A stretch of DNA of 64,000 nucleotides, taken from Carpediemonas membranifera BICM. Its lineage: Eukaryota > Protista > Fornicata. The notes under the pieces were generated by a model. The model was not told the DNA's origin and ran no database searches. It saw only the letters and a program-made list of their open reading frames with translations. The stretch is taken from contig JAHDYR010000038.1 of NCBI GenBank assembly GCA_019828565.1, forward strand, positions 698,735-762,734. The letters run 5' to 3'. Made by a program: the position numbers and the translations under genes. This document shows, piece by piece, positions 14,465-48,742 of the stretch (positions are counted from its first letter, which is position 1; every line of letters begins with the position of its first letter).

Positions 14465-16324
14465 CTCATGCCACATGGGGAGAAGAGCAGCCTGCTGCAG
14501 CCGGGACACTTGGTGTTCTTCTTGACGCAGTTTGGTAGATCAATCACCTGGCGCGGCGCCATCTCGCACTCGCCGCCGTAGTGGGCCATGTGCTCTTCCT
14601 GGCTGGCCACACAGAGCAGGCACTTGTGGCAGAAGTCCTGGCGACACTTTGGACACGTTGACATCTTGCAGCTATCCAGGTCGCCCTCACGAGTTGTCAG
14701 CTCGCCGCACGCCGGGCAGCGGCGGTAGACGGGGACGTCCACGGCGGCGCCTCTGCCGAGCGTGACTAATTCGCACGTGCCGAGGATTTTGTTAGACTCT
14801 AGCAGAGTTGGGATGTCATCTTGCGTAAACCATGTCTTCCTGTCAATGGTGAAGAAAGACGCCGTTTGCCCCGGCACTACTGGGGTCGAATCAATGATGC
14901 CATCCGCCATAGCATCAGCGTTGGTAATGTTGGGCAGGTGGAGCTTGCCTGAGCAGTCGACCACTAGATGCCTGTGGTCGTGTAGGACAACGGGTGTTGA
15001 ACCACTGGGTAAATGATTGCCGAACACGTGGAAGGCGAAGCGGCGGTGCGTCTCGTCGTCCTCGAGCACGGCGCGGAGGGCGTCCTGCACGCCCTGGCTG
15101 TCCGCGGGGAAGCGCAGCGGGGCGAGCACAGCGTCGACCGTGAGCGGGTTGGGGCGCACGAGCAGGGCCCGCAGCTGGGCGGCCGTCAGTGCCCGAATCT
15201 TATCGGCAAAGCATGTATGAGCGGTCAGGCCGTTGTAGATCAGTCCCATATACCTGGCAAAGACACATTCCAGATTCTTACGGTACTCTGCCACATTCCC
15301 CCTGAAATCGTCAAGACTGTCATAAACTTCTTCAATTGGTTTTCTCAGGGCCTTGTCGACCTCGGGCATCAGTGCCCTCAGCTGCACGCGGCCGCCAGTG
15401 AGTGCGACGAACCAGGCGTCGCTTACCATGCCTGCCGGGATGCGGAGCCCGTGGAGCAGCATGAGCTGCAGCAACCGCCCCAAGCCGACGAGGATGGGCT
15501 GGAGCTCATCAATTCGCGAAGACAGTGTATCTAGTGTATCCTTGTTGAACATGAGAGAATCTTCACGGAATATTGGGGCAGAACAGATGTATGACCCAAT
15601 CTCATGTGTCAGGCTGATGTTTGGGAGATCCGAAATGATCTCAGCGATCTTCTCGGCGGGGGAATGCCCAGAAAGCGTGACTGAGTCGACAAAGAAGTCT
15701 GTTGTGCACCATGCAAGCTTAGTAACTACGGCTGCAGACGAAAGGGCGGGACTGTCGCCCTCTACCGTGATATCAATGCTTGGTCTCGAAAACATGCGGA
15801 AACACGCCTGCTCGACATCGGCCTTGAAGTTAAAGGCCCCCGCGAAGTGGTTGTTAGCAGCATGGAGGTCGAACTCGGGGTCAATGTCGCCGAGCTGTCC
15901 GGCGAAGAGGCCGTCGGCCAGGGCGCGGCGGACGGACCAGCGGGCCTCGGGGTGGGTGGCGAGCATGCCGGAGAGCACCTCGCGCAGGGCGTCGGGGACA
16001 GCGACGGTGGCGAGCAGGGCGGTGCAGAGCTGGTCGTCGTTGACGGTCGAAGCTGCTGCGAGGTCGCTAGTGATCAGGCTGAGAAGTCTATGGTTGAAGT
16101 CAAAGTAGTCCGGCGCCATGGACCCGAGCATTGTCAGGCCCGCGTGGTAGACGTCTGCGGCCTGCTGCTCGCGGTGGCTCAGCTTCTTCCCGGCCTTGCG
16201 GGCGGCGATCTCCTCGGGCGCGCTGAAGGCGAGCGTGCCGATGTTCACTCCGGTCGCGGTCGCGTTCACGGCGTCCATGTTCGAGGCCGTCTCGAAGTCG
16301 ACGAGCACGGGGTGGCCCTCGCGC

Positions 16325-16356
<32 letters not shown>

Positions 16357-18765
16357 ACAGACGCCCGCGCTGTGCAGGTCGTGGATCGCGGTGAGCAGGC
16401 CGCGGAGCAGTCTGCGCTGAGTGTCGGGCGAGTCGGCTGGGGCGTCGCGCAGGTGGCGCTCGAGGCGCTCCATGACGATCGCGCCGGTCTTCCTCTCAGG
16501 ATCAGAGAGGTCGACGAGGACGAAGTGCAGCCTGGGCACGGCGGGGCTGTGCGCCATGCGCGACAGGATGCCCGCCTCGCGGTCGCAGAGCTTGCGCTGG
16601 TGCGTGCTGTCGAGCTTGAAGGTCTTGGCGAAGTAGGTCTGGCCGTCGCGGGCCACGATCTGGCACAGCGCTCTGTTCTCGCTGACGGTCGACTCGACGG
16701 CGAAGTCGGACAGCGACAGGTCGGCGCGCATCTCGGGGAGGTCCATGAGGTGGGCCAGCCCCATCTCGCGCAGCTCGGCGAAGAGGCTGGCCGACGGCGC
16801 GGTGATGGCGCCCAGCTCGGGGCACAGGGCGAATAGATGCGGTGTGCAGTCAGCCAACAGCCCTTCTATCTCTGCGATGCGGCGCCTGACTCCAACGAGC
16901 TCAACCTCACTCTCCGCCACACGATCAATCGCCGCCTTTCGCATAGCAGTAATGGCCTCGTCCAGGTGGGCTGCCCGCGTCTTGAGGTGGTAGTAGTCGC
17001 CCCGCTTCTTGCACTGCTGGACTACATCCCGGGCCATCCTGTACTTATCGAGGCTCGCCTCCGCCTCCAACCGGCGTCCGTCAAAATCGGGCGTGCCGAG
17101 CTCCTCTTGGGAGAACTCCGCGAGCTGCTCCTCACACCGGGCTATCTCGAAGTCGAGCCTGCTGCGGCACGCGTGCTGATTACGGCCGCACATGGGGTCG
17201 ACCATGATGTCGCATCTCCTGATATTCTCGTATCTCGGATGGATTCTGATGCCAGGATCATCTTCTGGTGATACGTGAAGGAATGTACAGTTATCATGGA
17301 AACATCCATCGCCCAGAGGGCAGGGCTTTGTGGGGATATTCCAACCATCGGGGAGACTGTGGTCAAAGGTCAGCCTGTGAGTAATATCCTTCATCAAGCC
17401 GCACTGGGGCCCTTCTTGACACTTAGGGAGGTCCAAATGGACGAAGTTGCTCTTGTGGTCTGGATCATCCGACTCTGCGCAGTTTATGCCGAGCGGGCAG
17501 ACATGTCTGAATGAACGACAGTGGGTTGGGTCCTTCCGGGCGGTGCAGAGGTGTGGTCTCGAGCAAAAGGGGTGCGGGACGGGCGGGCATATCGAATGGT
17601 GTCTATATGCCATCGTATGAGCGGGGTCGTCTTCAAGGCCGCAGAAGCCGTCTTCCTCGCATTGTGGGGGTTGGGCGAACGCCCTGTTGTGGATGGCAGA
17701 GAAGTCCAAGCATTGCCCGCCCAGCTTGCACTGGGGCTGGGGGACATGAACGAACATGACGCAGTGCTCGCGGGCGGCAGGGGTGTCACTGCCGTGTAGA
17801 GGGCACTCGAGGCCGTCAGGGCAAGGTGTGGGGTGATAGAAGCACGATAAATGGGCCTGGTCGGCCTGTGCGCATGCCATGCCAAGGCTACAGAGTCGTC
17901 TAAGGCCAAATTTGTGGTCAAGTTTCTTCGACTCGGGCCTCTCAAGCTGTTTCGTGTCGATGATGTCTTTGAACGCGGCAATATCCCTCTCCCAGGGGAG
18001 TGCGATGGTTATGGACTTAAAATGCTGTCGATACAAGGGGAGCAACGATCTGATGACCCAGGCAGTATGGGTGTTTGGATTGCCATGGATCTCGCAGCCG
18101 AAGGCCGAAAGCACGAGGTGTTGCACGCTGTGACGTATCGCGGCTCTGAACATCAGGTGAAGATGCTCAGCAGTCTTCTTAGCGTCCGCTTCGTCCTTGA
18201 TGAAGCAGTTTTGGGTGTCCGACCCGACCAGGACGGTCTCCGGGTACATGGCGGGGGTGGTTGAAATTATCGTGCACGTCACGGGTCGGCACATGAGTCG
18301 GTAGTCATCCCTCATCGCGTGGCGGAAGATTGTGACATTTTCCGTGATAATCGCGTCACAGGGCCATGGATAGGCCGGGAATTCGGACTGGGTGGATCCA
18401 AATTCGGTTGTGCGCTCATCCAGGGCGAACGAAAGTGTGGTGCGGCGCATGATGTCGGCCTCCTGGTTTCGCTCTCCCCGCTCGTATCCCCTACCGACGT
18501 TAATGTCGTCAGCACTGCACAAACAGCCGATGCGCTCCCCAGGGTACATGTCACTGAGCATACTGGTGGCATCCAGGCTGTCCTTCTGGCACAGTGTGAC
18601 TGTGCCGAGCTCAAAGCCCTCTTTGAACGCCGCGAGAGTACCGCCCTTGGTAGTGGCGTCGGCAATGTTGTACGTGTGCGTCTTCATGCAGGCTGACAGG
18701 CTCTCTAGACCTGCAGCAGTCCGATACTCGCCGGCCCGGATGCACCCGAGGGTGTGGGCGACCAC
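14419..18765 (-). CDS. Macrodomain (bacterial-type PARG-like, degenerate) + about 8 PBZ/CCCH zinc fingers + coiled coil + protein kinase + HECT-like + IBR/RING2 fingers; probably the 3' part of a fusion with 18807..20300
   Basis: 'SADDINVGRGYERGERNQEADIMRRTTL' and 'LVLSAFGCEIHGNP' (PARG-type macro); C-x5-C-x6/7-H-x5-H repeats; HRDLKPEN/DFE/APEE kinase; 'VVDCSGKLHLP' HECT C-lobe-like; 'CPACG...CKMSTCPKCRQDFCHKC'. Starts at GTG; frame open back to about 19002. Confidence 0.8.
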
Positions 18766-20725: not shown

Positions 20726-23216
20726 ACCTCAACAACTACAACCGGTCTGGGTTCGACATGCACGTCGAGGACGACGGGACCAAGGGCAAGAACAAGGCCA
20801 AGCGCCAGATACGTGAACAGTAAATGGCCACCTCTTTGTGACACAGAACTGAGTGAGGTCGGGATGGACAGTCCGTGGCGGTTGAGTCATATCATCCCTG
20901 GTCGAGGTTGACAGGCAAGGGTATCGACCGAACGCCCTGGGGCACCGGGAATCCGCAGATAAACGATGAGTGCGGTGCTTGGCCTTCTTGCACCAGGCGT
21001 GCACGCTGGGTCCAGGAACCTCGCGAGGGTGGTGCGGTCGACCCGGCTGCGGTTTGACGGGGAAGGAGGGCAGGGAGAGTAAACGGAGACGGCGACATGG
21101 AGCACGAGCTGGCAGGGTCAAGCTGCTCCGACCGAGCATCCATCGCACTGCTACAACAGACCTTTACTCATTCCACGTCTGGCCGCACCTGCACCTCATG
21201 TGCTGGCACCCGCCGTCCTTGTAGTAGCGCACGCCGCACCCGGGGCAGCGGCGATAGCCCAGTCGGTTCGCCAGCATCTCGTCGTAGTGCTCGCAGCTGC
21301 CGTCGTGGATGACGGGGTCGTCGTGGCCGAGGCAGACTGTGTTCCCGCACCCGCGGCACGCAAGCTGCCTCCGGTTCGCGCTGACCGTTGCCGAGCGATG
21401 GCAGTGGGGGCATGCGAACGTGCGCAGCCTGGCGACGCCCTCGGGCAGGTCGACTGTCTGGCGCGGCGCCATCTCGCACTCGCCGCCGTAGTGGGCCATG
21501 TGCTCTTCCTGGCTGGCCACGCAGAGCAGGCACTTGTGGCAGAAGTCCTGGCCGCACCGGCACGCCGACATCTTGCAGCTGTCCAGGTCGCCCTCGCGTG
21601 TTGTCAGCTCACCGCATGTGGGGCAGCGGCGGATGACGGGGACGTCCACGGCGGCGCCTCTGCCGAGCGTGACCAGGCGGCACGTCTGGAGGATGTCGTT
21701 CTGCTCGACCAGGGCGTCGATCTCGGCCCGCGAGTAGTGCACGCGGCGCGGGATGACGTAGAAGTCGGCTGCCGCGACTGCTGTGGCAGGGGCCGAGTCG
21801 AGCACCGCCTGGCGCATCTGGCCGGCGTCCTCCAGACGAGGGAGGCGGGCGCCCCCCGCGCAGTCGGAGTACACGCGGTGGTCGTCGTGGAGGGTCACGC
21901 CGACGGAGCCGGGCTGGGGGAGCTGGCCGCCGAACACGTGGAAGGCGAAGCGGCGGCGCGTCTCGTCGTCCTCGAGCACGGCGCGGAGGGCGTCCTGCAC
22001 GCCCTGGCTGTCCGCGGGGAAGCGCAGCGGGGCGAGCACAGCGTCGACCGTGAGCGGGTTGGGGCGCACAAGCAGGGCCCGCAGCTGGGCGGCCGTCAGC
22101 GCGAGGACCTTGGCGCTGAAGCGCGTCTTCGCGGCCATGCCGTTGCGGACGATCTGCATGCGCTCGGCGAAGCGGCGTCTCACCTCGTCGTCGCGCGCCT
22201 TGAGGTCGCCGTCGAAGCCCTCGAGCGGGCACGCGGCCGCAGCCTCCGCAACAGACCGCTGCAGCGCCCGGGCGACGATGGGCATCAGCGCTCCCAGGTC
22301 GACGCGGCCGCCCGTGAGCGCGACGAGCCAGGCGTCGCTAACCATGTCCGCGGGCAGGGTGATGCCGTCGAGCAGCATGAGCTGCAGCACGCGGCCGAGC
22401 CCCAGCAGGACCGGGCGCAGGTCGTCGAGCGGCATGCCGAGGGCGTCGGGCGAGAGGACCAGCGTGCCCTCGCGGAAGATGGGCACAGCGAACTCCATGC
22501 CCCCGACGGCCTGGCGGACGGCCACGCGCGGCAGCTCGACGACCAGGTCGGGCAGGGCCTTCGCGGAGTCGTCGCCCGAGAGCGTCGCGGGGATGGCGAA
22601 CAGGTCCTCCTCGCACGCGGCGATGGTGGCCAGGCTCGCCGAAACGGCGTCAGCGAGGGCGATGTCGATCGGCTCCTCGCGGAACATCTGCAGGCGCGCG
22701 CGGTCGATGTCGTCGACGAAGGCGTGGGCGCTCGCGAACCTGCTGCTCGCCGCGTTGAGGTCGACCTCGGGATCCAGCTCGTTGGCCGAGGCGGCGAAGA
22801 GGCCGTCGGCCAGGGCGCGGCGGACGGACCAGCGGGCCTCGGGGTGGGTGGCGAGCATGCCGGAGAGCACCTCGCGCAGGGCGTCGGGGACAGCGACGGT
22901 GGCGAGCAGGGCGGTGCAGAGCTGGTCGTCGTTGACGGTCGAAGCTGCTGCGAGGTCGCTAGTGATCAGGCTGAGAAGTCTATGGTTGAAGTCAAAGTAG
23001 TCCGGCGCCATGGCCCCGAGCATCGTCAGGCCCGCGTGGTAGACGTCTGCGGCCTGCTGCTCGCGGTGGCTCAGCTTCTTCCCGGCCTTGCGGGCGGCGA
23101 TCTCCTCGGGCGCGCTGAAGGCGAGCGTGCCGATGTTCACTCCGGTCGCGGTCGCGTTCACGGCGTCCATGTTCGAGGCCGTCTCGAAGTCGACGAGCAC
23201 GGGGTGGCCCTCGCGC

Positions 23217-23248
<32 letters not shown>

Positions 23249-26200
23249 ACAGACGCCCGCGCTGTGCAGGTCGTGGATCGCGTTGAGCAGGCCGCGGAGC
23301 AGTCTGCGCTGAGTGTCGGGCGAGTCGGCTGGGGCGTCGCGCAGGTGGCGCTCGAGGCGCTCCATGACGATCGCGCCGGTCTTCCTCTCAGGATCAGAGA
23401 GGTCGAGGAGGACGAAGTGCAGCCTGGGCACGGCGGGGCTGTGCGCCATGCGCGACAGGATGCCCGCCTCGCGGTCGCAGAGCTTGCGCTGGTGCGCGCT
23501 GTCGAGCTTGAAGGTCTTGGCGAAGTAGGTCTGGCCGTCGCGGGCCACGATCTGGCACAGCGCTCTGTTCTCGCTGACGGTCGACTCGACGGCGAAGTCG
23601 GACAGCGACAGGTCGGCGCGCATCTCGGGGAGGTCCATGAGGTGGGCCAGCCCCATCTCGCGCAGCTCGGCGAAGAGGCTGGCCGACGGCGCGGCGGACA
23701 CCTTCAGCTCGGGGCAGAGCCGGACGAGCTGCGGCGTGCGGCGGGCCAGGACGGCGTTAATCTCGGCGATGCTGGCGTTCACGGCCTCGAGCTCGGCCGC
23801 GACCTCGGCGGCCTGGGCGTGCCTGCGGCGGCGACGGAGGTAGCTGACATCGTCTTCGAGCTCCTCGGCCTTGCTCTTGAGGTGCTGGTAGTCGCCGAGC
23901 GTCTGGAGCTGCGCAGTGATGGCGTCGGCCTCGGCGAACCCAGCCAGGTGGACCTCAGCCTCGGCGGCCAGGCCAGTCAACCCGCGAATGGTGCGCTCCT
24001 CGGCGCTCGTGTCATCGCCAAGCTCCTTCCGACCGAGGGCCCACTGCCACGTCTCGCGGACGGCCTGCTGGAGGAAGGCGCGGAGCGTGGCGTACCTGGC
24101 CTGCAGCTCGGGCGCGAGGGTGGGGAAGCCGGCGACCTCGTTGTCAGCGGCCTTGAGCACGCGGGCCATCTCGTCGAGCGAGGGGAGAGACTCTGGCTCG
24201 AAGGCGGTGGCGCCGTCGACGATGGCCGAGGCCGCCTGGTAGTCAGCGCTGACAGCTGCGATCGTGGCCTCGAGCGCCTCGACCCCGGCCCTGGCCTGGG
24301 CGATGACCGCCTCGTACTCGGCGATGCGGGTCTCTGGCTGGCGTCTGGCATGGCCGAGTCGGCTGATGAGACCAGCGGGCGACGGGATGGGGCCAACGCC
24401 ATCGTGGGCCGGGATGGCGGCCGAGAGCAGGGGGTGGCCCTCGAGCATGGCGCTGATGTCCGCGGCGCGGTTGGCTTCGGTGAACCGGCCGGTCTGGGGC
24501 GAGGCGCAGAACGAGGCCAGGGTCGCCTTCAGGTCGGACAGCTCAGCTCTGAGCAGCCCCATGTTATGCTCCTGCTCGGCCATGGCTGTCTGAAGCATCA
24601 GCCGGAAGTTCCCATCAGAAAGGATCGCGTCGACCTCGAGGGCATGCCGGTCGGCGCTGAACAGGCCATCGGTCAGAGTGACGGTTGTGGCTGGGTCGGC
24701 GGTGGTGACAGTGAAGCTGCTCGGCACTGCGTGCGATGAGACGTGAGTCACGACCTGCCTCAGCTGGTCAACAGTCGCGTCGATCAGGAAAACGTCCGAG
24801 ACGGCTCCCGAGTAAAGATCGGAGACAACCTGGTCACGCAGGCTGGCGTTGAAGCATCTGACAAGCTTGGCAAGCCCGGCGTCCTCGGAGTCTGTCTTGG
24901 CGAACTTGTTCTCCAGCCAGACTCTGGCGGCGGGGCGGGTCAGCGTCATCGTGAAGGAGCGGGGCAGACCAGTGGCGAGGAAGTGGAGGAGGATGCGAGC
25001 GAGGTCGCAGGGGAGTGCTGCTGAGTCGCCAGGGTCGATGGCGATGTCGGCGTCGGGGGCGACTGGGCTGGAGCAGCGCTGGTTGACGGCCAGGAACTGG
25101 GGGATGCGGGGGAGTGTGCTCCAGAGCCTGACTGTATTGTCGCTGGACCCAGAGACGAGGATAGAGCCGTCTCGGGAGAAGACGACGCTCCTCACCACAT
25201 CACCATGCCCCGAGAGCGTCCTGATCAGTGCCCCGGTCGCGCCCCACTGCTTGATAGTTTTGTCTGCAGACCCAGCCACCAGAGTCCTGCCGTCGGGGGA
25301 GAAGGCGAGGCCAAACACAGAACTGGTGTGCCTGGTGTGCCCAAAGGGCGTGGCCGGCATGGCAAAACCCGCTCTGTTGCCGAATCCCCCGACCTGCGCA
25401 GTCTGCCCGAACGCGGACCTCGGTACATCCCTGCTGTGCCCAGCGAGGGTAATATGGGGAATAAGCTGGCCAGTTGCAGGGTCCCACAACTTGACGGCGT
25501 TATCGCTGCCGGATGCGACGATGGCCCCATCGGGTGACACGGCAATGCTGTAGACTTGTGCGCCATGGTTCATGGTCCTGATGCATGCGCCAGTGGCGGA
25601 GCTCCACTGCTTGATCGTGCTGTCAACACTTCCAGTGTAAATGGTCGAGCCATCAGGGGAGATGGCCACGCCATACACATGATGACCATGCCCTGTGAGT
25701 GTCAGCCTGCACTGCCCTCTCTCGACGTCCCAGACCTTGGCGGTCTTGTCAGCCGATCCGGAGACCAGGGTGCGGCCATCAGACGAGAATGCAAGGCGCC
25801 ACACAAATTCAGTGTGCCCACTGAGTGTCTGGGTCTGCTGGCCTGTGGCTGCGTCCCAGAGCTTGACGAGATTGTCCCGCCCCCCAGACGCGATGGTCGA
25901 CCCGTCCGGCGACACGGCAACGGCGTACACCTCACATTCATGCTTCATGGTCCTGATACACTGACCAGTGGCCGAGTCCCACTGTTTGACGGTGCCATCA
26001 GGTGACGCAGTGATGGTGCCGTCGGGGGAGGTGGCGACACCAAGCACCTGTTTGCCATGCCCTGTCAGTGTCTTAATGCACACACCAGCCATAGGCTCTG
26101 TGGACCGCGTGTTCCATGCTTCGAGCGCGAGCTCAACCGAGCCATCTTCATGGTCGGCCTCGAGTCTGCCATCCACCATCGTGACGGTAACGGCGGGCTC

Positions 26201-26745
26201 AGTGAGCTCCATCGTTAGCGTATCAGGTTCTATGCCCGCGCTGAGCAGGTACTGGACGACCTGCTCGAGGTCCTGGACGGTGATCGGCGTCTCGCCTCGC
26301 TTGCGGACCTGGATGCCCTCGGGGCCGGGGCGCTCGGAGATTGCGGTGCGGATCTGAGCGTCTACTGCTCTGCAGTCGTCGCTGCGTGAGAATGCAGCCT
26401 CGATACGTACCACTGGCTGTGTAATCATGGAATTTGCAGATCAAACGCGTCAGGCGTGCTGTGTGAGAGAATCGCGCTGCAGCCGTGTTGCTGCTGTTGT
26501 AACGCACCATCTGTGTGAGAATAGCTCCGTGATAGCGTACTTTCGGCAGCTTCGCGTCATCGAGAGTTTGTGTTGCTCGAATGTCGCGTGACGAAAATGG
26601 TCTAAACTCCGCTGCCTCCGCAATACCCCGCGCCGTCAGCATTTACCTGCGCCCGGGCGTCCTCCCCCTCATCAGGTCCCCGGCCGTGACCTTGGTCGAC
26701 TTCAGCACGCTCAGCGGCACCCTCCGCCCCGTAGTCGCCATCGCC
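20726..26745 (-). repeat. Copy A of a ~6 kb inverted segmental duplication (partner 45318..51115)
   Basis: Reverse complement matches 45318..51115 almost base for base, from 'ggcgatgg..actacggggcggagg' to 'gtagttgttgaggt'. Confidence 0.95.
21164..26428 (-). CDS. WD40 propeller + coiled coil + protein kinase + HECT-like + IBR/RING2 (RBR) multidomain protein, intact copy (1754 aa)
   Basis: About 7 WD repeats; YFAK/DREAG/HRDLKPEN/DFE/APEE kinase; HECT-like LGRVLQLML...LTAAQLRALL...RRRFAFHVFG...YSDCAGGARLP; terminal RRCPGCG..YYKDGGCQHMRCRCG (RBR RING2 signature). Confidence 0.88.
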
Positions 26746-28634: not shown

Positions 28635-28844
28635 TGGAGTCGTGCCGGCCACACAGCTCGGGCCAACCTCCTCAGTGGTGCGTGTGTCTTGTATTAGTAT
28701 GATTGCTTCGCGCTGACCCGGGAGCTTCGCTCTCAACCGACGCCCCGTATTAATAGAGAGCAATCAACGGGAATTGAGGGATAATATGGCCATAAACGGA
28801 TCGATAATCGGGGATAATAGGGTTAATTTACTCATATACGGCAC

Positions 28845-28878
28845 TGTGCCGCGCAGGATTAGAATTGTTGAGTCCAAA
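28845..28878. repeat. Direct repeat copy at the 3' end of the Fanzor cassette (putative guide)
   Basis: TGTGCCGCGCAGGATTAGAATTGTT(g)AGTC(c)AAA; 25 bp identical, 32/34 matching to 31020..31053. Confidence 0.95.
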
Positions 28879-28990
28879 ACACACAGTGATCCGAGCAGCA
28901 TCAGGATCGCAGTGTGGTTCATCATTCTCTATCAATCGTGCGCAGCATATCACGCGCCGCTGTAGCGCGTGCTTGCTCAACTTTGCAAGT
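28845..28990 (-). ncRNA. Putative Fanzor omega-RNA (scaffold hairpins followed by guide)
   Basis: Directly downstream of the Fanzor stop: stem CACGCGC/GCGCGTG (28951-28971, extendable to 28944-28977) and stem CACAC..GATCC/GGATC..GTGTG (28880-28916), abutting the repeat; 5' end unknown. Confidence 0.6.
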
Positions 28991-30690
28991 TAATGATAGC
29001 GAGGAAGAGCACCTCTCTGGGAGTCGTAGTGGAAAGGAGATTGCTCTATCTGATCTGAAGTTGCATCATAGGTGCACCAAAGGATGTTCTCGCTGGCGCT
29101 CTTATCTCGGTGAGAGAGATTGAGAAGTATGTCTCTCTGCTCGGGATGCCGACGAAGCCGTTCAACGCGCTATGGAGCTCCCTCGCACGCGGGATTCTGG
29201 CAGAGCATGGTGCGGTGTGTGTGCACCACACGTCTGAAGTGTGCTTTGCAGTGTGGGCACACGATGGAAGTGCGAAATTCGGAGACCATCGTGACAGTCA
29301 CGACGACGTTGTGCCGGAGCATGATGCCAGGGAGAGCTCGAGCAAAGTGGCGGTACGGAGCACAGGAGGGAGTGCCGGCGGAACCGAACAGTGCAGCCCC
29401 ATACGCGACTTCGAGATGAATGGGCTCCGGGGGGCGCCCGCCGAGATCATCCAGGAGTTAACGTCCAGCCCGGGCGAAGTGCTTCAGGCGCAGACAGTGA
29501 TTGGCAAAACTCGCACGGCGGAAACACTTTCTCGTCCCCTCGTTGATGATGTTCTCATGGACAAACCTAATCGACTGTTTGAGAGCCTCTAGACTTGTCG
29601 TTTTGAACGATGCTGCGCTCATATTCACGCGGAAAGAGGGGGTGGCAGTGTAGCCACACTTAGCGAGTACGCCAGATACACTCTGCCCGTCTGGGCGGCG
29701 GATCGTGTAGCCGCCCAGCGACCGAGCACCAGGGTCGAAGCCCATGAGAGCTTGAATGTCCGGGGCAGGAGTAGCCTCGGCGTCATCCTGACCGAGCCGA
29801 GCCCGCTTGTTATTGCTACCCTTTTTGTACGTGGGCCGGTCAGCCACCCGACCGCCACGGTATTTCTCGCGACCCACCCAAACCGTCACAGCAACAGAGA
29901 CCCCGTCAGTCTTCACAGAGAGCACTCTGCGGAGCTTGGTGATGTCGCCGTGATCACGCTCGTATCTATCAACCTGCTCAGTGGTCAAGTTCTTAGTTGC
30001 TGACCAATTCACGTGCACACGCAGGCGCCTCTTCATCGCTGGGGTGAGCGACATATAACCGTACTCGATGGTCATGAACCCAGGCCTGACCGGTGCCATC
30101 GGCACGAACGGAACGAGCTTCGGCTCTGGCAGGGCCTGACTGAGCTCGAGGTTCACGGCACGAGTGAGTGTGACCAGCTTGGTCACTGCAGCACTCATGC
30201 GCGTGACGCACGACAGCACGCCGACGAGGGCCTCAGCCACGGTACCAGTGCGACCCACCCGTTGCCCCTCGGGCAATGCATGCATTTGACGATGATGCAT
30301 GCCATGATCGGCGGCTATGGCGGCAACCTCAGTGTCGAGCTCGCCTATGGTGTCGAGACAATCCTGTCGAACACCTGGCCGATCATGGAGGAGCGGACGC
30401 ACCCGTTCTAATCCAGCACGAAGACGGGTCAGGTACCCGGGTGACGCGCGCGAGAGCCAGACCCGGGTGGCTGTGGAGTACTCGCCCAACCAGGTGTCAA
30501 ATGGCTTGCACAAGCCAATGTAGCTATAAGCCGTGACGAAGTCCTGGACGAGTGGGGTTATGTCAGGGTCCCTCCACATCGCCATGTCGCCAATCCACCT
30601 GCACCGATCCGCTGCCTTTGCCTTCGACACCTTTTGCTGAGCAATGACGATCTGCTTAAGGTAAGGTAAGGTACCTTACCTTACGATCAT
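28990..30690 (-). pseudogene. Fanzor1 (TnpB-derived) RNA-guided endonuclease, about 550 aa, interrupted by two in-frame stops
   Basis: One frame: 'SVKTDGVSVAV'; RuvC-I 'LMGFDPG' (Asp 29734-29736); TAA 29458-29460; 'VAYGAALFG...P'; RuvC-II 'MVSEFRTSIVCPHC' (Glu 29278-29280); 'CQNPAC'; TAG 29170-29172; RuvC-III 'HRDKSASENI' (Asp 29104-29106); final TAA 28990-28992. Confidence 0.9.
30661..30684. repeat. Perfect 24-bp palindrome GTAAGGTAAGGT/ACCTTACCTTAC
   Basis: Read directly from the sequence. Confidence 0.95.
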
Positions 30691-30808
30691 TTCTTTTCAG
30701 GGTTCATCAGCTAGCAGCATCCCTCAAAACACAAGAAACCAGCATCATACAACACAAAGCGTCTTTACTACTGCTACAACCGCTTTCCACCACTTGTGTC
30801 TCTCACAA

Positions 30809-30992
30809 CAGACTAAGATGACGAAGACGACACGAGCTTCAGACGCCGGCAATGGACGACAGATGAGCGCGTAACAGACGAGCACAGACGCGAAAGAAGA
30901 CAGCAGCGTTCGACACAGATGATGGACGACAGACGACGCATCTTTTCGTGCAGACCGACGACTGAAAGCACGAAAGCCAGATGGTACAGACG
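30809..30992 (+). repeat. Subterminal array of 10 CAGAY(G) motifs at the 5' end of the Fanzor cassette
   Basis: CAGAY at 30809, 30840, 30860, 30875, 30885, 30916, 30930, 30951, 30978, 30987; ATGGACGACAGA duplicated at 30852 and 30922. Confidence 0.7.
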
Positions 30993-31019
30993 AGGGCTGA
31001 AGTGGGTGAGTGGAGGTAG

Positions 31020-31053
31020 TGTGCCGCGCAGGATTAGAATTGTTCAGTCTAAA
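31020..31053. repeat. Direct repeat copy at the 5' end of the Fanzor cassette (putative target or target-site duplication)
   Basis: TGTGCCGCGCAGGATTAGAATTGTT(c)AGTC(t)AAA. Confidence 0.95.
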
Positions 31054-31301
31054 TAAAAAAGATCCCGCCCAGAACCGTCGCTCTTACCATCGCCGACGCC
31101 CTCATGTCCGCTACCCTTCTGGTGTACGACAGGTGGGCCGTCAGACTGAACCTGTTCAGTCCTCTGGAGTTCATCCCAGGGGGGTCGACAGCCTAAGTCA
31201 CCTTTACATGAATCCTCCACATAAACCCTCTAAACATAAACCCTCTAAATACCACAGGCACTCGGCGCTAACCTGCACCACAACAACCCGAGCGAAATTC
31301 C

Positions 31302-34300
31302 ATGGTCATTCTCACTGACTGTGATCTCCAGATCACAGTAGGCGACGTTGAGAGGAAGAAAGCTCGCGAGCGTGCCCGTATTCAGGCCGAAAAGCGCAAG
31401 AAGGAGGAAGAACACGCTGCCGAGAAGAAACGGCGCGAGGAGGCAAGGAGAAAGGAAGCTACCCAGCGTTTCCAGGACAAATTGATGGAAATACAATCCG
31501 AGGTGAAGAGTTCAGCGCACAAGAACCTTGATCGCAAGGCCAAGCGCGAGGCCACCCTGCATCGCAACATGGACGCACTCCTCAAGGCCGGGAAGAACCC
31601 ATACGAGGTCTTCAGACAGCGCGACGTCGAGAAGGAGAAGACACGCCTCCTGAAGGAACGTGATGAGCGGCTTCAGTCAAACCAGGAGGCCGTGGAGCAG
31701 TGGGTCAGGGAGGACGGGGAGCGGATCAAGAGACTCGAGGCCGCAGACAGAGCGAGGAAGGACCAGGAGCGTACTGTGCCGAACTTGGAGCAGATCAGGG
31801 CGGAGCGGGTGGTGGAGCGGCTGTCCTCCGGTGTCGACGGGATCCCCACTCACTCGTTCGGGAGCGGGAAGGCCACCCAGGACATCGTGCTGCGTGCCGA
31901 GAAGGAGCTCAAGCGCATGGCTCGCAAGGCTGGCATGAACCACCGCGAGTTGCTCCAGCCGATCGCCCAAGCCACAGAAACTGCCGCAATCGCCCAGAGA
32001 TCGATGTTCAAGGACGGCGACTTCGAGGACACCAGCGACAACATCGTCCTGGACACCGCGAGCAAGCCCAAGCCCGGGTTCAAGCCCACCACACGCATGC
32101 AGGCGAGGGGCGTCACCCGGGGCATGAACTACACGGCCAGACCACAGGTGACGGCGGGGCGGGTGTTCGAAGGCGCCAGTTACACACCGTCGCCCGCAGT
32201 GGTCGAGTTCACAGACTACTCTCCCGGCAAGTCGTATAAGTTCAAGCTGACACTGACGAACTCGAGTCTGACCCGATCCAGCTTCGTCATCGCAGACCTG
32301 CCCCCGGACGCCGCCAGGGTGTTTGACGTGGAGTACAAGAAGCCCGGCCTGCTTGGAGCTGGTCTGTCGGTGCCCGTCCTGCTCACATTCACCCCGAACA
32401 CACCCAATGACCTCGACGCGGAGCTGGAAGTGCGGTGCGACACGGGCATCCTATACGTCCCTATCAGATGCCGCGGCCGTAAGATCGACCTCCAGCTGTC
32501 CGAGCCCGCCATCGTGTTTCCCCCGGCCTACGTCGGGTCGACCACTCACCGCCTGGTGACGCTGACAAACCACGGTGCCCTTGACGCCGTGTGTCTGGTC
32601 GAGTGGTTCGAGCCGAAGGAGGAGGTTTACGGCAATGCCACACCCACGGCTGCACTCAACCCGCCGAGCCGACTCGGGGCCCGACCTGCACCAGGGAGCT
32701 CCGTGGCCGAGTTCGTATCGGACGTGGCCTCGACCAAGGCGACTCTGGCCCCGGTGGACACGCCCATCGTCGCCTCTCTGGTCCAGGAGATGTCGGGTGA
32801 CGCCCCCGCAGAGGACGACTCCGACGACGAGGAGGGTCTGGGCAATATGGACGACGCCCTCATGCACTCCAAAACCAGCCGCATATTCAGCGTCCCAGCT
32901 CGGTCAGCAACCTCATTCATCGTCGCGTTCAAACCGAAGACGGATGACGAGCTCCACACGATGCTCGCCATCCGGTACAAACCCCAGCTCAGGTCCACTC
33001 TCACGGCGGAGATCGGCGCCTTTGCCCAGCTCAAGAAGCTCCAGGAGATCATGGCCGACCAGGAAGCCCAGGAGACCCGGACAGACAAGGAGGTCGGCAC
33101 CGCTCTGGGCGCTCCTACGGTGCTGTCGATGGTCAGTGAGTCCGCCGAGGTCCAGAAGTCGTTGAAGTACGAGTCGGCGCACTATGGGTCCGTCGACCTG
33201 CACATCAGGGCGGCGGGTGAACCGAATCCGATCTCCGCGGTTGAAGATACAGTCGATTTCCAGACTGTGATCTCCGGTGACACTTATCGGCAGATTGTGA
33301 CATTGCAGAACTCATCACACGTCACTCTGTCGTTCACGGCAAAGATCCCCGCCGACGTGGCCCGGACCGGACTCATTGCTTGCACCCCCAAGTCCGCCTG
33401 GGTCCAGCGGGAATCGACGATGGGCATCGCAGTGAAGCTGACGCCGGACTATGGCAAGACCCAGCAGATAGCCGCGGCACACCCGGACTGGGTTGACGGT
33501 AGCGGCGTTATGAGGGTGCCGATGTCGGTGGCGGTGCCCGGCCAGCCGCTCAAGGTCAGAATTGGCCTTAAACTGCGGGTGACTGAGACGACTGTGCTCG
33601 TGAAGCAACGGGTAGAGACTGTCGTACAGGAGCAGCCTGTGGCGTCGGAAGCAGACGAAGAAAAGCCCGCCGACAACAGCGAGGCCGAGGCCAAGGATGC
33701 CGAAGCCGAGGCTGACCCCGAGGTTGTCGAGGCCGACTCCCCCGCCCCGTCGATCGCCCACACGGGCACGCCCCGCTCCCGCCTGGACTTCGGCACAGTG
33801 TACATCGGGCAGTCCCGGTCTATGGTGGTCGATGTCACGAACACAGCGTTGGTCGAGCAGATTATCAGATTCACTAAGGTGCCACCGGATCTCCGGATTG
33901 TCCCCAATGACGGCATCTTCGCCATACCCGCGCAGACGACCCTGCCGGTCACCTTTGTGTTCATGCCCCGTGCGGTTGCCCCACTTAGCTCAGCTGTCAA
34001 GGTCCAAACAGACCTCGGGTTCGAGACTACAGTTTTTATCGCCGGCAAGTGCATCACACCACCTCTTGTACCCAGACCTCAGCTGCTACTGCTGCCCGCC
34101 GTAGCCTGGGACGACAACGTCGAGACGACGCTCACCCTGACGAATGACGGCAACGCCCCCCGCTGGTTCGACCTCGCCCTCCCCGCGGCCGACTGCCCCT
34201 TGAGCTTCACACCGCGGGCCGGTAACATTCCCGCGAAGTCCTCGCTGAAGGTGATCGTCAAGTTCAGGCCCAAGCGGGGCCACTTCGACCCCGACGCCCT

Positions 34301-35633
34301 TGCCCAGTGGGCGACCTTCATGGCCCACGGGTCATACAAATTCGTCCGGATTGACGACCGGCCCCGGCCCAAGGGCGAGCCGGTCGGCCCAGCCCTGACG
34401 TTCTCCATCCCACTGTTCGCGTCAGACCCCATCGACATGGCCACAGCTGGGGCCACACTCGCAGCAAACCCCGCCTGCTCGGCACAAGCCCAGCTCATCC
34501 AGCTCGAGACAATCGTGGTCGAGCCGCCTCTCTTCGCCCAACTGCCCGACCAGGCGGTGGGGGACGGGCAGGCTCAGATCACACTCGACTTCGGGGACGT
34601 AGCCATCGGAAGGAAGGTCGTGCGGTCGTTCCTGCTGAGTACAAACGGAAACGCCATGGTGTCTCTCAATACCGAGCACCCCCACGCTTCTGGTATTTTC
34701 GAGGTGCTCAACTCCATATGGAGCAGGAATGTGACGTCCCAGCAGTCGCTTGAAGTCCGAGTGCAGTTTTCGCCCCACGAAGCTGTGGAGGAGCTCGGCC
34801 AGCTCATGGTACGCTCCTCTGACGGCCACGGCGTCACTGCCAACCTCAGGGGCCGTGGCGCCCTGCCGCGCCTGGTGGTCGACCCCGAGGTGACCTTCAT
34901 CGCTTTCCCAGGCTCCATGCCGTTGTCTGAGTCGACCCGCACGATCAAGCTGAAGAACATTACCAGCCTGACGTGCACACTGAAGGCTGAGGTGGTCGAC
35001 CCCTCGTGCATCGACCCCACTGGCCCCGTGTTCATCGCCCAGCCGGGTGAGACGGAGGTCGGGCCGCACGAGGAGGTCGAGGTGACGCTGCTCGCGTCGG
35101 CCCGGACGGCGGGGATCTACACGGCAGCCGTGCGTCTCATAGTAGACGAGATCCACCTCGTCAAGGAGATCCCGCTCGCCCTGCATGTGCACAACAAGCC
35201 CCTGGTGCTCTCATCGAACCTGCTCGAGAGCGCGGAGGACATTGCAGCGCTACGGGCCTCAGCCAAGCTCGGCGGCCGGTGCCCTGTCATCCTGTTCGAC
35301 GACAACTTCAAGGACGAGACGGCCAATGGCGAGTCGACCCGCACTGTCCTCATCCGCAACGGGGCGGCTCCAGCGAAGTCGACCTCGTCATGGGAGATCG
35401 AGGCGCCCACCCTCGAGGGGCTGACCATTGCCCCGCTCAAGGGCACGCTCGACTCCGGGGCGACGGCCACAGTCACGATGAAGTTCAAGCCGCCCGCCCT
35501 GAACCCCGAGTCCGCTGAGTACCATCTGAAGGCAGACCATTGGGCGACGTCCAAGGTGAGCGTGATGCTGACCCATACGGCCGACGACGTCGAGCGGCGC
35601 GTCGTCAATGTTCGGGCGTTCCTGGGCCGGTGA
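31302..35633 (+). CDS. CFAP74: Cilia- and flagella-associated protein 74-like (N-terminal coiled coil + multiple ASH domains)
   Basis: 'LLKAGKNPYEVFR' and 'PSPAVVEFTDYSPGKSYKFKLTLTNSS'; repeated LDFG.V..G......N ASH domains; true 5' end may involve small introns. Confidence 0.75.
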   Translation: MVILTDCDLQITVGDVERKKARERARIQAEKRKKEEEHAAEKKRREEARRKEATQRFQDKLMEIQSEVKSSAHKNLDRKAKREATLHRNMDALLKAGKNPYEVFRQRDVEKEKTRLLKERDERLQSNQEAVEQWVREDGERIKRLEAADRARKDQERTVPNLEQIRAERVVERLSSGVDGIPTHSFGSGKATQDIVLRAEKELKRMARKAGMNHRELLQPIAQATETAAIAQRSMFKDGDFEDTSDNIVLDTASKPKPGFKPTTRMQARGVTRGMNYTARPQVTAGRVFEGASYTPSPAVVEFTDYSPGKSYKFKLTLTNSSLTRSSFVIADLPPDAARVFDVEYKKPGLLGAGLSVPVLLTFTPNTPNDLDAELEVRCDTGILYVPIRCRGRKIDLQLSEPAIVFPPAYVGSTTHRLVTLTNHGALDAVCLVEWFEPKEEVYGNATPTAALNPPSRLGARPAPGSSVAEFVSDVASTKATLAPVDTPIVASLVQEMSGDAPAEDDSDDEEGLGNMDDALMHSKTSRIFSVPARSATSFIVAFKPKTDDELHTMLAIRYKPQLRSTLTAEIGAFAQLKKLQEIMADQEAQETRTDKEVGTALGAPTVLSMVSESAEVQKSLKYESAHYGSVDLHIRAAGEPNPISAVEDTVDFQTVISGDTYRQIVTLQNSSHVTLSFTAKIPADVARTGLIACTPKSAWVQRESTMGIAVKLTPDYGKTQQIAAAHPDWVDGSGVMRVPMSVAVPGQPLKVRIGLKLRVTETTVLVKQRVETVVQEQPVASEADEEKPADNSEAEAKDAEAEADPEVVEADSPAPSIAHTGTPRSRLDFGTVYIGQSRSMVVDVTNTALVEQIIRFTKVPPDLRIVPNDGIFAIPAQTTLPVTFVFMPRAVAPLSSAVKVQTDLGFETTVFIAGKCITPPLVPRPQLLLLPAVAWDDNVETTLTLTNDGNAPRWFDLALPAADCPLSFTPRAGNIPAKSSLKVIVKFRPKRGHFDPDALAQWATFMAHGSYKFVRIDDRPRPKGEPVGPALTFSIPLFASDPIDMATAGATLAANPACSAQAQLIQLETIVVEPPLFAQLPDQAVGDGQAQITLDFGDVAIGRKVVRSFLLSTNGNAMVSLNTEHPHASGIFEVLNSIWSRNVTSQQSLEVRVQFSPHEAVEELGQLMVRSSDGHGVTANLRGRGALPRLVVDPEVTFIAFPGSMPLSESTRTIKLKNITSLTCTLKAEVVDPSCIDPTGPVFIAQPGETEVGPHEEVEVTLLASARTAGIYTAAVRLIVDEIHLVKEIPLALHVHNKPLVLSSNLLESAEDIAALRASAKLGGRCPVILFDDNFKDETANGESTRTVLIRNGAAPAKSTSSWEIEAPTLEGLTIAPLKGTLDSGATATVTMKFKPPALNPESAEYHLKADHWATSKVSVMLTHTADDVERRVVNVRAFLGR

Positions 35634-45317: not shown

Positions 45318-48300
45318 GGCGATGGACTACGGGGCGGAGGGTGCCGCTGAGCGTGCTGAAGTCGACCAAGGTCACGGCCGGGGACCTGATGAGGGGGAGG
45401 ACGCCCGGGCGCAGGTAAATGCTGACGGCGCGGGGTGTTGCGGAGGCAGCGGAGTTTAGACCATTTTCGTCACGCGACATTCGAGCAACACACAAACTCT
45501 CGATGACGCGAAGCTGCCGAAAGTACGCTATCCCGGAGCTATTCTCACACAGATGGTGCGTTACAACAGCAGCAACACGGCTGCAGCGCGATTCTCTCAC
45601 ACAGCACGCCTGACGCGTTTGATCTGCAAATTCCATGATTACACAGCCAGTGGTACGTATCGAGGCTGCATTCTCACGCAGCGACGACTGCAGAGCAGTA
45701 GACGCTCAGATCCGCACCGCAATCTCCGAGCGCCCCGGCCCCGAGGGCATCCAGGTCCGCAAGCGAGGCGAGACGCCGATCACCGTCCAGGACCTCGAGC
45801 AGGTCGTCCAGTACCTGCTCAGCGCGGGCATAGAACCTGATACGCTAACGATGGAGCTCACTGAGCCCGCCGTTACCGTCACGATGGTGGATGGCAGACT
45901 CGAGGCCGACCATGAAGATGGATCGGTTGAGCTCGCGCTCGAAGCGTGGAACACGCGGTTCACAGAGCCTATGGCTGGTATGTGCCTTAAGACACTGACA
46001 GGGCATGGCAAACAGGTGCTTGGTGTCGCCACCTCCCCCGACGGCACCATCATCACTGCATCACCTGACGGCACCGTCAAGCAGTGGGACTCGGCCACTG
46101 GTCAGTGTATCAGGACCATGACGCATGGAGGCCAAGTGTACGCCGTTGCCGTGTCGCCGGACGGGTCGACCATCGCGTCTGGGGGGCGGGACAATCTCGT
46201 CAAGCTCTGGGACGCAGCCACAGGCCAGCAGACCCAGACACTCAGTGGGCACACTGGATTTGTGTGGCGCCTTGCATTCTCGTCTGATGGCCGCACCCTG
46301 GTCTCCGGATCGGATGACACGACCGCCAAGGTCTGGGACGTCGAGAGAGGGCAGTGCAGGCTGACACTCACAGGGCATGGCCATCATGTGCGTGGCGTGG
46401 CCATCTCCCCTGATGGCTCGACCATTTACACTGGAAGTATTGACAGCACGATCAAGCAGTGGAGCTCCGCCACTGGCGCATGCATCAGGACCATGAACCA
46501 TGGCGCACAAGTCTACAGCATTGCCGTGTCACCCGATGGGGCCATCGTCGCATCAGGTGGCAGCGATGGTTCCGTCAAGTTCTGGGACACCGCAACTGGC
46601 CAGCTGACTCGGACCCTTGATGGGCACACCAATTTTGTGTGCAGCCTCGCCTTCTCCCCCGACGGCAGGACTCTGGCGTCTGGGTCTGCAGACAAGACCA
46701 TCAAGCAGTGGGACGTTGCCACCGGGGCACTGATCAGGACGCTCTCGGGGCACGATGGCACGGTGCAGAGCGTCGCATTCTCCAGAGCCAACTCTACCAT
46801 CGTGTCTGGGTCTGACGATAGAACTGCCAAGGTCTGGAGCACACTCCCCCGCATCCCCCAGTTCCTGGCCACCGTCAACCAGCGCTGCTCCAGCCCAGTT
46901 GCCCCCGACGCAGACATCGCCATCGACCCTGGCGACTCAGCAGCACTCACCTGCGATCTCGCTCGCATCCTCCTCCACTTCCTCGCCACTGGTCTGCCCC
47001 GCTCCTTCACGATGACGCTGACCCACCCCGCCGCCAGAGTCTGGCTGGAGAACAAGTTCGCCGAGACAGACTCCGAGGACGCCGGGCTTGCCAAGATTAT
47101 CAGAAGCTTCAACGCCAGCCTGCGTGACCAGGTTGTCTCCGATCTTTGCTCGGGAGCCGTCTCGGACGTTTTCCTGATCGACGCGACTGTTGACCAGCTG
47201 AGGCAGGTCGTGACTCACGTCTCATCGCACGCAGTGCCGAGCAGCTTCACTGTCACCACCGCCGACCCAGCCACAACCGTCACTCTGACCGATGGCCTGT
47301 TCAGCGCCGACCGGCATGCCCTCGAGGTCGACGCGATCCTTTCTGATGGGAACTTCCGGCTGATGCTTCAGACAGCCATGGCCGAGCAGGAGCATAACAT
47401 GGGGCTGCTCAGAGCTGAGCTGTCCGACCTAAAGGCGACCCTGGCCTCGTTCTGCGCCTCGCCCCAGACCGGCCGGTTCACCGAAGCCAACCGCGCCGCG
47501 GACATCAGCGCCATGCTCGAGGGCCACCCCCTGCTCTCGGCCGCCATCCCGGCCCACGATGGCGTTGGCCCCATCCCGTCGCCCGCTGGTCTCATCAGCC
47601 GACTCGGCCATGCCAGACGCCAGCCAGAGACCCGCATCGCCGAGTACGAGGCGGTCATCGCCCAGGCCAGGGCCGGGGTCGAGGCGCTCGAGGCCACGAT
47701 CGCAGCTGTCAGCGCTGACTACCAGGCGGCCTCGGCCATCGTCGACGGCGCCACCGCCTTCGAGCCAGTCTCTCCCCTCGCTCGACGAGATGGCCCGCGT
47801 GCTCAAGGCCGCTGACAACGAGGTCGTCGGCTTCCCCACCCTCGCGCCCGAGCTGCAGGCCAGGTACGCCACGCTCCGCGCCTTCCTCCAGCAGGCCGTC
47901 CGCGAGACGTGGCAGTGGGCCCTCGGTCGGAAGGAGCTTGGCGATGACACGAGCGCCGAGGAGCGCACCATTCGCGAGTTGACTGGCCTGGCCGCCGAGG
48001 CTGAGGTCCACGTGGCTGGGTTCGCCGAGGCCGACGCCATCACTGCGCAGCTCCAGACGCTCGGCGACTACCAGCACCTCAAGAGCAAGGCCGAGGAGCT
48101 CGAAGACGATGTCAGCTACCTCCGTCGCCGCCGCAGGCACGCCCAGGCCGCCGAGGTCGCGGCCGAGCTCGAGGCCGTGAACGCCAGCATCGCCGAGATT
48201 AACGCCGTCCTGGCCCGCCGCACGCCGCAGCTCGTCCGGCTCTGCCCCGAGCTGAAGGTGTCCGCCGCGCCGTCGGCCAGCCTCTTCGCCGAGCTGCGCG

Positions 48301-48710
48301 AGATGGGGCTGGCCCACCTCATGGACCTCCCCGAGATGCGCGCCGACCAGTCGCTGTCCGACTTCGCCGTCGAGTCGACCGTCAGCGAGAACAGAGCGCT
48401 GTGCCAGATCGTGGCCCGCGACGGCCAGACCTACTTCGCCAAGACATTCAAGCTCGACAGCGCGCACCAGCGCAAGCTCTGTGACCGCGAGGCGGGCATC
48501 CTGTCGCGCATGGCGCACAGCCCCGCCGTGCCCAGGCTGCACTTCGTCCTCCTCGACCTCTCTGATCATGAGAGGAAGACCGGCGCGATCGTCATGGAGC
48601 GCCTCGAGCGCCACCTGCGCGACGCCCCAGCCGACTCGCCCGACACTCAGCGCAGACTGCTCCGCGGCCTGCTCACCGCGATCCACGACCTGCACAGCGC
48701 GGGCGTCTGT

Positions 48711-48742
<32 letters not shown>

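Follow-up and report, generated by a model that had tools for sequence, protein, structure and literature searches.

A Fanzor-like nuclease family on a retroelement-like carrier in Carpediemonas membranifera

What kind of mobile element carries the decayed Fanzor-like gene found in Carpediemonas membranifera, and how does it spread? The host is a metamonad reported to lack parts of the canonical replication and repair machinery. The locus lies in a 64,000-nucleotide stretch of contig JAHDYR010000038.1 (the window), in a divergent intergenic gap between a minus-strand gene and the CFAP74 gene. The original prediction, made from the letters alone, described a complete and compact Fanzor1 cassette at 28845-31053 that was hidden by in-frame stops. 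Published Fanzor carriers are DNA transposons, and retrotransposons are said not to carry Fanzors (PMC13565253).

A decayed copy and its intact relative

The 390-aa ORF (30630..29458, minus strand), the motifs and both in-frame stops lie where they had been placed. Reading the same frame past the TAA that closes the ORF and past a second stop, TAG, gives 546 codons to a final TAA (28992-28990), in agreement with the predicted length of about 550 aa. Along this frame are TDGVS (29896-29910), GFDPG (29728-29742), EFRTS (29266-29280), a CxxC...CxxxxC finger and RDKSASENI (29083-29109; Table 1).

Table 1. Features of the inserted unit and its target site (window coordinates)
Feature	Position	Strand	Remarks
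Left 5-bp target-site duplication, GGCAC	28840..28844	+	identical to 31257-31261
Outer 34-bp repeat, left end of unit, starts TG	28845..28878	+	its minus strand is the putative omega-RNA 3' end
Putative omega-RNA scaffold, ~145 nt after stop	28845..28989	-	fold z = -3.3
Fanzor pseudogene frame, 546 codons	28990..30630	-	two internal stops, N-terminus deleted
RuvC-III Asp, RD motif	29104..29106	-	D597 of intact copy
Private nonsense change TGG>TAG	29170..29172	-	TGG in 29 other copies
C4 zinc finger, CxxC-x15-CxxxxC	29185..29259	-	PF07282 sub-threshold, E 0.006
RuvC-II Glu, six residues before finger	29278..29280	-	E539 of intact copy
Private nonsense change CAA>TAA	29458..29460	-	stop absent from 29 other copies
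RuvC-I Asp in DPG	29734..29736	-	D384 of intact copy
Palindromic scar (22 nt) replacing 245 bp of 5' coding sequence	30662..30683	.	common to copies L002-L004
Polypurine-tract-like stretch, 17/21 purines, ends GGTAG	30999..31019	+	abuts inner repeat
Inner 34-bp repeat	31020..31053	+
5'-truncated 3' end of RLE-type non-LTR retrotransposon	31059..31249	+	ORF end, stop 31194-31196
Terminal heptamer TACCACA, right end of unit, ends CA	31250..31256	+
Right 5-bp target-site duplication	31257..31261	+
Host target motif, GCAnnTTA(T/A)G type	31267..31278	-	10 nt from right end of unit, before CFAP74 gene

The window copy is one member of a young multi-copy family. A search of the assembly (24.2 Mb, 69 contigs) gave 255 candidates, and the 40 long matches that were scored are 92-98% identical. 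Many cassettes are internally deleted. In the copy comparison neither window stop occurs in any of 29 other copies, and 245 bp of N-terminal coding sequence are gone. Thus, the window copy is not a complete cassette merely hidden by stops but a pseudogene, defined by its private stops and its N-terminal deletion. Stop read-through or an alternative code is ruled out because both stops are private; the host code is standard here, so neither is needed to explain the frame. The palindrome at 30662-30683 was considered as an intron and rejected, since it is a deletion scar.

A genome search, which had been suggested for finding intact copies, yielded one. The full frame is present in 1 of 30 copies (L006, contig C18; L006:1648-3549, minus) and encodes 634 aa, the ordinary length of a Fanzor1, so "compact" does not describe the family. 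This natural protein can be assayed directly, without repairing the window copy. Logan contigs from public runs also cover the element; they come from other copies, and an RNA origin for them is a guess. One public gene model of the family (P0001) is labelled "cytosine deaminase", probably a mis-annotation. Proteins P0004, P0034, P0039, P0041 and P0044 and loci L028 and L029 hint at a third Fanzor subfamily and at chimeras between subfamilies.

The intact protein matches the Fanzor/TnpB motif of Bao and Jurka (PMC3627910), applied as D-x(125,275)-[TS][TS]-xx-C4 finger-x(5,50)-RD, with D384, TS at 542-543, the finger at 546-570 and RD at 596-597. It also carries the Fanzor signature of Yoon et al. 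(PMC10711439), DPG at RuvC-I and a shifted Glu, as D384 and, six residues before the finger, E539. A strict pro-Fanzor expression (a second CxxC with Asp 4-8 residues later) does not match, as the finger ends in CxxxxC with a 26-residue spacer to RD. That expression was built for TnpB relatives, so its failure lowers only the Fanzor2 or pro-Fanzor reading. The D/E/D triad is kept both in this family (family 1) and in a second one (family 2) that is 40-50% identical to it. Giant-virus proteins of 625-707 aa form its language-model (ESM) neighbours at 0.98, and a Cas12f1-like TNB domain is present in many of them.

Sequence searches of Pfam, NCBIfam and PDB with the protein gave nothing above threshold, the PF07282 match over the finger region being sub-threshold. 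Two named HMMER searches returned Carpediemonas proteins only and no outside homologue, and 31 further unnamed hits appear to belong to the same Carpediemonas families. The structure models are of low confidence (pLDDT 42 and 34). Searching with a low-confidence model, Foldseek listed Fanzor1 or Cas12f in seven of the first eight PDB rows (best SpuFz, E 0.018), and a viral fold search found a Cas12f1-like TNB protein at E 4e-4; a wide fold search gave nothing above threshold, with the VIA search taken up by a helical bundle. The motifs, the language-model neighbours and the weak fold hits make it very likely that the family-1 protein is a Fanzor, and as such it is a very divergent one and probably, by prediction, an RNA-guided nuclease. 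The Fanzor signature in the original prediction therefore holds, and its assignment to the Fanzor1 branch is suggested by length and language-model neighbours, not by a tree. A full-text literature search found no paper naming Fanzor and Carpediemonas together.

The carrier unit and its right end

The coordinates first proposed correctly mark the repeat-bounded cassette, but the inserted unit extends from 28845 to 31256. That account did not describe a carrier with retroelement-like features, a LINE tail, a target motif or an intact copy. On the plus strand the unit reads: target duplication, 34-bp repeat (TG), Fanzor gene backwards, purine tract, repeat, LINE piece, heptamer (CA), target duplication. 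Of the 18 copies that could be evaluated, 15 have a perfect 5-bp duplication around the whole unit. The 34-bp repeat has 205 genomic matches (control, 0), and the purine tract precedes the inner repeat in 27 family-1 copies. Solo units of repeat plus tail are also present, each with its own target duplication. The repeats are not themselves a long target duplication, because they are constant across copies and the variable 5-bp duplication lies outside them. There are no terminal inverted repeats beyond 4 bp.

Several of these features are those of LTR elements: TG...CA ends with a target duplication of 4-6 bp, and a polypurine tract abutting the 3' repeat. Two identical full LTRs are not present. 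The outer repeat lacks the heptamer, and a LINE piece usually interrupts the inner repeat. No primer-binding site after the 5' repeat was evident by eye. As the carrier does not have two identical LTRs, we do not file it as a non-autonomous LTR element, despite its appearing to work like one.

The LINE piece derives from a non-LTR retrotransposon in which a CCHC knuckle is followed by PD-(D/E)xK-type RLE motifs (read from locus L041). Its atlas neighbours carry zf-RVT (0.93), and a Pfam search with it gave no hit. In the window the tail has a short 3' UTR with a slippage duplication. Such tails occur in most family-1 right ends, with a fixed 3' side and 19 entry points in 22 junctions, and with 0-8 extra bases at every junction except one. 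Uninterrupted ends of repeat plus heptamer are rare (about 5-8 genome-wide, against about 115 tail candidates). On the tree of Fanzor bodies, the two variants of the tail do not group together (6 changes, against a shuffled mean of 5.2, with three chimeric or partial rows left out), which argues that tails are gained or swapped at each insertion. Judging from this tree, LINE tail and nuclease gene are inherited separately. One copy of the LINE stands alone inside another Ty3 LTR, without the heptamer (L041, compared with empty L047/L049). It duplicates a different, TAAAC-containing word of 5-7 bp that resembles the TCTAAA word bracketing the tails of Fanzor units. No full-length LINE of the tail subfamily was found in the assembly, where its longest piece has 279 codons; frames of 1391-1505 codons hold only 36%-identical relatives. 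A LINE 3' fragment is also present in each of two tandem arrays, with periods of about 1.68 and 2.08 kb (C8:148108-156685 and C8:931046-935637).

Family 2, which like its Ty3 counterpart was characterised from coordinates, short pattern matches and individual loci, has the same paired-repeat layout and likewise a purine tract before the repeat. Its repeat occurs 230 times and brackets family-2 ORFs. In most family-2 units no LINE piece is seen. The right end of family 2 includes about 30 nt that also occur, unchanged, at the end of a Ty3/gypsy element of 4.55 kb encoding integrase and chromodomain; 11 pairs of these ends are spaced 4551-4555 bp. In the Ty3 element of locus L035, the purine tract before the LTR ends like the family-1 tract. 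No Ty3-sized pairs with a family-1 right end were found. This Ty3 element may supply the family-2 end; it does not explain targeting. The target motif is present at none of 11 flank-side Ty3 ends, compared with 26 of 78 other ends among those listed (Fisher p = 0.03).

The genome is very rich in reverse transcriptases (1519 RVT_1 candidates in 24 Mb), and those sampled are Ty3/gypsy. One Ty3 family has a very short LTR of about 110 bp that contains the same motif, GCAGTTTATG (L049:1610-1730, minus; L041:1528-2530), and is followed, where a primer site would be expected, by a perfect 12-nt palindrome, possibly for self-priming. Solo ends of family 2, 43 bp long, lie at a family-1 target site or inside the outer repeat with shared 5-bp duplications (L008:760-850, minus; L012:3296, minus). 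Elsewhere in the window, a WD40-kinase-RING/IBR-like gene (about 1750 aa) is present in two inverted copies, 21164-26428 (minus) and 45635-51115 (plus), that are 97-98% identical, and 14548-16827 contains additional partial copies.

Target motif, putative omega-RNA and guide

GCAnnTTA(T/A)G lies 10 nt past the right end of family-1 units, always in a single orientation. A motif of this kind also accompanies family 2, at 11 nt in 37 of 40 matches, among the matches listed. Insertions are often just upstream of host start codons. Of 29 omega-side flanks, 12 open an ATG frame of at least 100 codons no more than 60 nt away, compared with 19% at random (p = 0.005), and thus a host gene in the same orientation tends to follow closely on the Fanzor. 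The right ends of several copies (L003/4, L007, L015, L020, L024 and L029) are ragged at the same motif-defined spot. In the window, the CFAP74 orthologue (31302-35633, plus; 1443 aa) starts 46 nt past the right end of the element. As a general core promoter the motif fared poorly, preceding 1 of about 50 long ORFs in the window; since it is rare there, only its enrichment at insertion sites stands. The 34-bp repeat also contains a match to the motif (28853-28862 and 31028-31037), and the family-2 repeat a near match.

The 145 nt after the stop fold better than expected (none of 200 shuffles was equally good) and end sharply at the boundary of family conservation, as an omega-RNA should. We therefore regard this region as a putative omega-RNA. 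Neither compensatory pairs nor covariation was found in its 13 near-identical copies. The putative guide would be the flank beyond 28845, that is, the target duplication plus the host 5' flank, and would match the empty allele. Across 14 sites, neither a TAM nor any other base is conserved beside the putative guide position, which does not agree with restorative homing in its described form. The idea that the Fanzor picks its insertion site by a fixed guide was also rejected: published cut positions (PMC10432273) do not agree with the 10-11 nt that separate motif and end. No guide matching the target site was seen in the loci examined.

Routes of spread and the role of the nuclease

The anatomy of the unit, its copy number, its target duplication, its target motif and its LINE tails are established. 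How it spreads must be argued from them, and we consider an RNA intermediate likely when Ty3-type and LINE-driven copying are taken together. The best explanation, about evenly balanced in our judgment, is a decayed non-autonomous LTR-like retroelement with an antisense Fanzor and its putative omega-RNA as sole cargo, copied and integrated in Ty3 fashion. The carrier RNA would extend between the two repeats, outer to inner. A resident Ty3/gypsy element would provide the reverse transcriptase that copies it and the integrase that inserts it, by way of the purine tract and the TG...CA ends. The right end would be supplied in trans, as suggested by family 2, whose right end recurs in a Ty3 LTR. 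At nearly every family-1 insertion, a LINE 3' end with the TCTAAA-like word would be captured between repeat and heptamer, either through a detour of the first strand transfer or through LINE insertion into the right end; LINE RNA ends would be taken up owing to their mimicry of the repeat's end. By binding the motif, a host factor would place the insert just before host genes, which would leave the Fanzor co-oriented with the host gene and make that gene's 5' flank the guide.

Some observations stand against Ty3-type copying. With an outer repeat that lacks the heptamer and no identified primer-binding site, the unit is not a canonical LTR element. The one Ty3 family tested lacks the target motif, and no Ty3-sized pair has the family-1 right end. 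Ragged right ends are not predicted from an integrase; their occurrence at one spot favours LINE activity or break repair. We think it unlikely, however, that the unit is simply a chimera like MINE, made when an RLE LINE nicks the motif-defined site, begins target-primed reverse transcription on its own RNA and then switches template to the antisense Fanzor RNA at its 3' end, with no integrase involved. Such a route would account for LINE pieces that are anchored at the 3' side, enter at many 5' points and have 0-8 extra bases, the slippage duplications, tails inherited apart from Fanzor bodies, the ragged ends, and the one-sided motif with fixed orientation, and WEIRD-MGL in Magnaporthe provides a precedent (PMC2104539). 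It explains neither the purine tract nor the fixed 5-bp duplication, nor why the right end of family 2 is identical to a Ty3 end. Moreover, the stand-alone LINE has another end and another duplication, its subfamily has no full-length member in the assembly (longest piece, 279 codons), and most family-2 units have no LINE piece.

Spread at the DNA level, by a cut-and-paste or copy-paste transposase encoded elsewhere or by templated repair of Fanzor-made breaks, with LINE pieces as later hot-spot insertions in the right end, seems quite unlikely to us, even though every Fanzor carrier published so far is a DNA transposon (PMC13565253) and Chlamydomonas Fanzor-Helitrons combine one fixed end with duplications (PMC3627910). 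The numerous internally deleted cassettes would suit it, and TG...CA ends with a 5-bp duplication would suit an unseen transposase. Yet inverted repeats stop at 4 bp, no transposase was seen in 30 loci, the purine tract and the Ty3-identical end are left unexplained, and the variable part is anchored distally, the opposite of Replitron fuzzy ends (PMC10288648). On any of these carriers, the protein might not be a working RNA-guided nuclease at all, and could be a Fanzor-derived promoter binder or regulator or an unrelated zinc-finger protein. The null results of the Pfam, NCBIfam, PDB and named HMMER searches beyond Carpediemonas, the poor models, and guides that would match host 5' flanks with no conserved TAM all lean that way. 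We regard it as improbable given the full published Fanzor motif, the triad conserved across two families, the TNB domains of the ESM neighbours and the Cas12f1-like viral fold hit.

If the carrier spreads by Ty3-type copying, what would the nuclease contribute? Our best guess, though slightly on the doubtful side, is that it benefits the unit by non-restorative homing at a subset of sites, in which an empty allele would be cut and then repaired from the filled one. Alternatively, it may be a decaying passenger or act by binding promoters. The frame is intact in just 1 of 30 copies and no TAM is conserved beside the guide, both of which weigh against the best explanation. As a whole, the picture of a three-part retro-parasite (Ty3-type ends, LINE tail and antisense Fanzor) that targets host promoters and uses the host 5' flank to guide homing into the empty allele is speculative, and we would not expect all of it to hold.

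Known systems resemble the unit in part. Like Fanzor1 (SpuFz1, GtFz1, PpFz1 and the giant-virus Fanzors), the protein has DPG at RuvC-I, Glu six residues before a C4 finger and an RD motif in about 630 aa, with a predicted structured RNA between stop and element end. Unlike them, it has no detected sequence homologue outside the species, its finger has CxxxxC as second half and a 26-residue spacer to RD, its carrier has direct repeats and a purine tract in place of TIRs, and its target duplication has no consensus able to serve as a TAM. TRIM/LARD-type elements and Ty3/gypsy chromoviruses share the TG...CA ends, the purine tract before the 3' repeat, the 5-bp duplication and solo ends, and Ty3/gypsy also shares the family-2 end through a resident LTR. 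In contrast, the Carpediemonas unit has asymmetric repeats, no primer-binding site that was found, an antisense nuclease as cargo, LINE pieces within its right end and a target motif not shared by the Ty3 family tested.

MINE (WEIRD-MGL, Magnaporthe) and U6-L1 chimeras likewise join a fixed 5' passenger to a variably truncated LINE 3' end within one target duplication (PMC2104539). Their duplications are 10-20 bp, whereas that of the Carpediemonas unit is fixed at 5 bp, and the passenger here encodes an opposite-strand nuclease and has its own repeats and purine tract. Replitrons and the Chlamydomonas Helitrons CRe-1/2/3 also have short direct repeats or one fixed end, orientation-specific insertion and extra sequence at one end (PMC10288648, PMC3627910). 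However, no HUH gene was seen in the Carpediemonas unit, its duplication length is fixed, and its extra sequence consists of a LINE 3' end, anchored on the far side, not of parental flank. Penelope/Chlamys was considered as a precedent and is not supported, as the paper does not mention Fanzor.

With the catalytic triad preserved in two families whose carrier bears retroelement hallmarks, the published carrier model can be tested directly. If the proposed reading is true, this would be the first Fanzor shown to travel on a retroelement and to home with no excision step.
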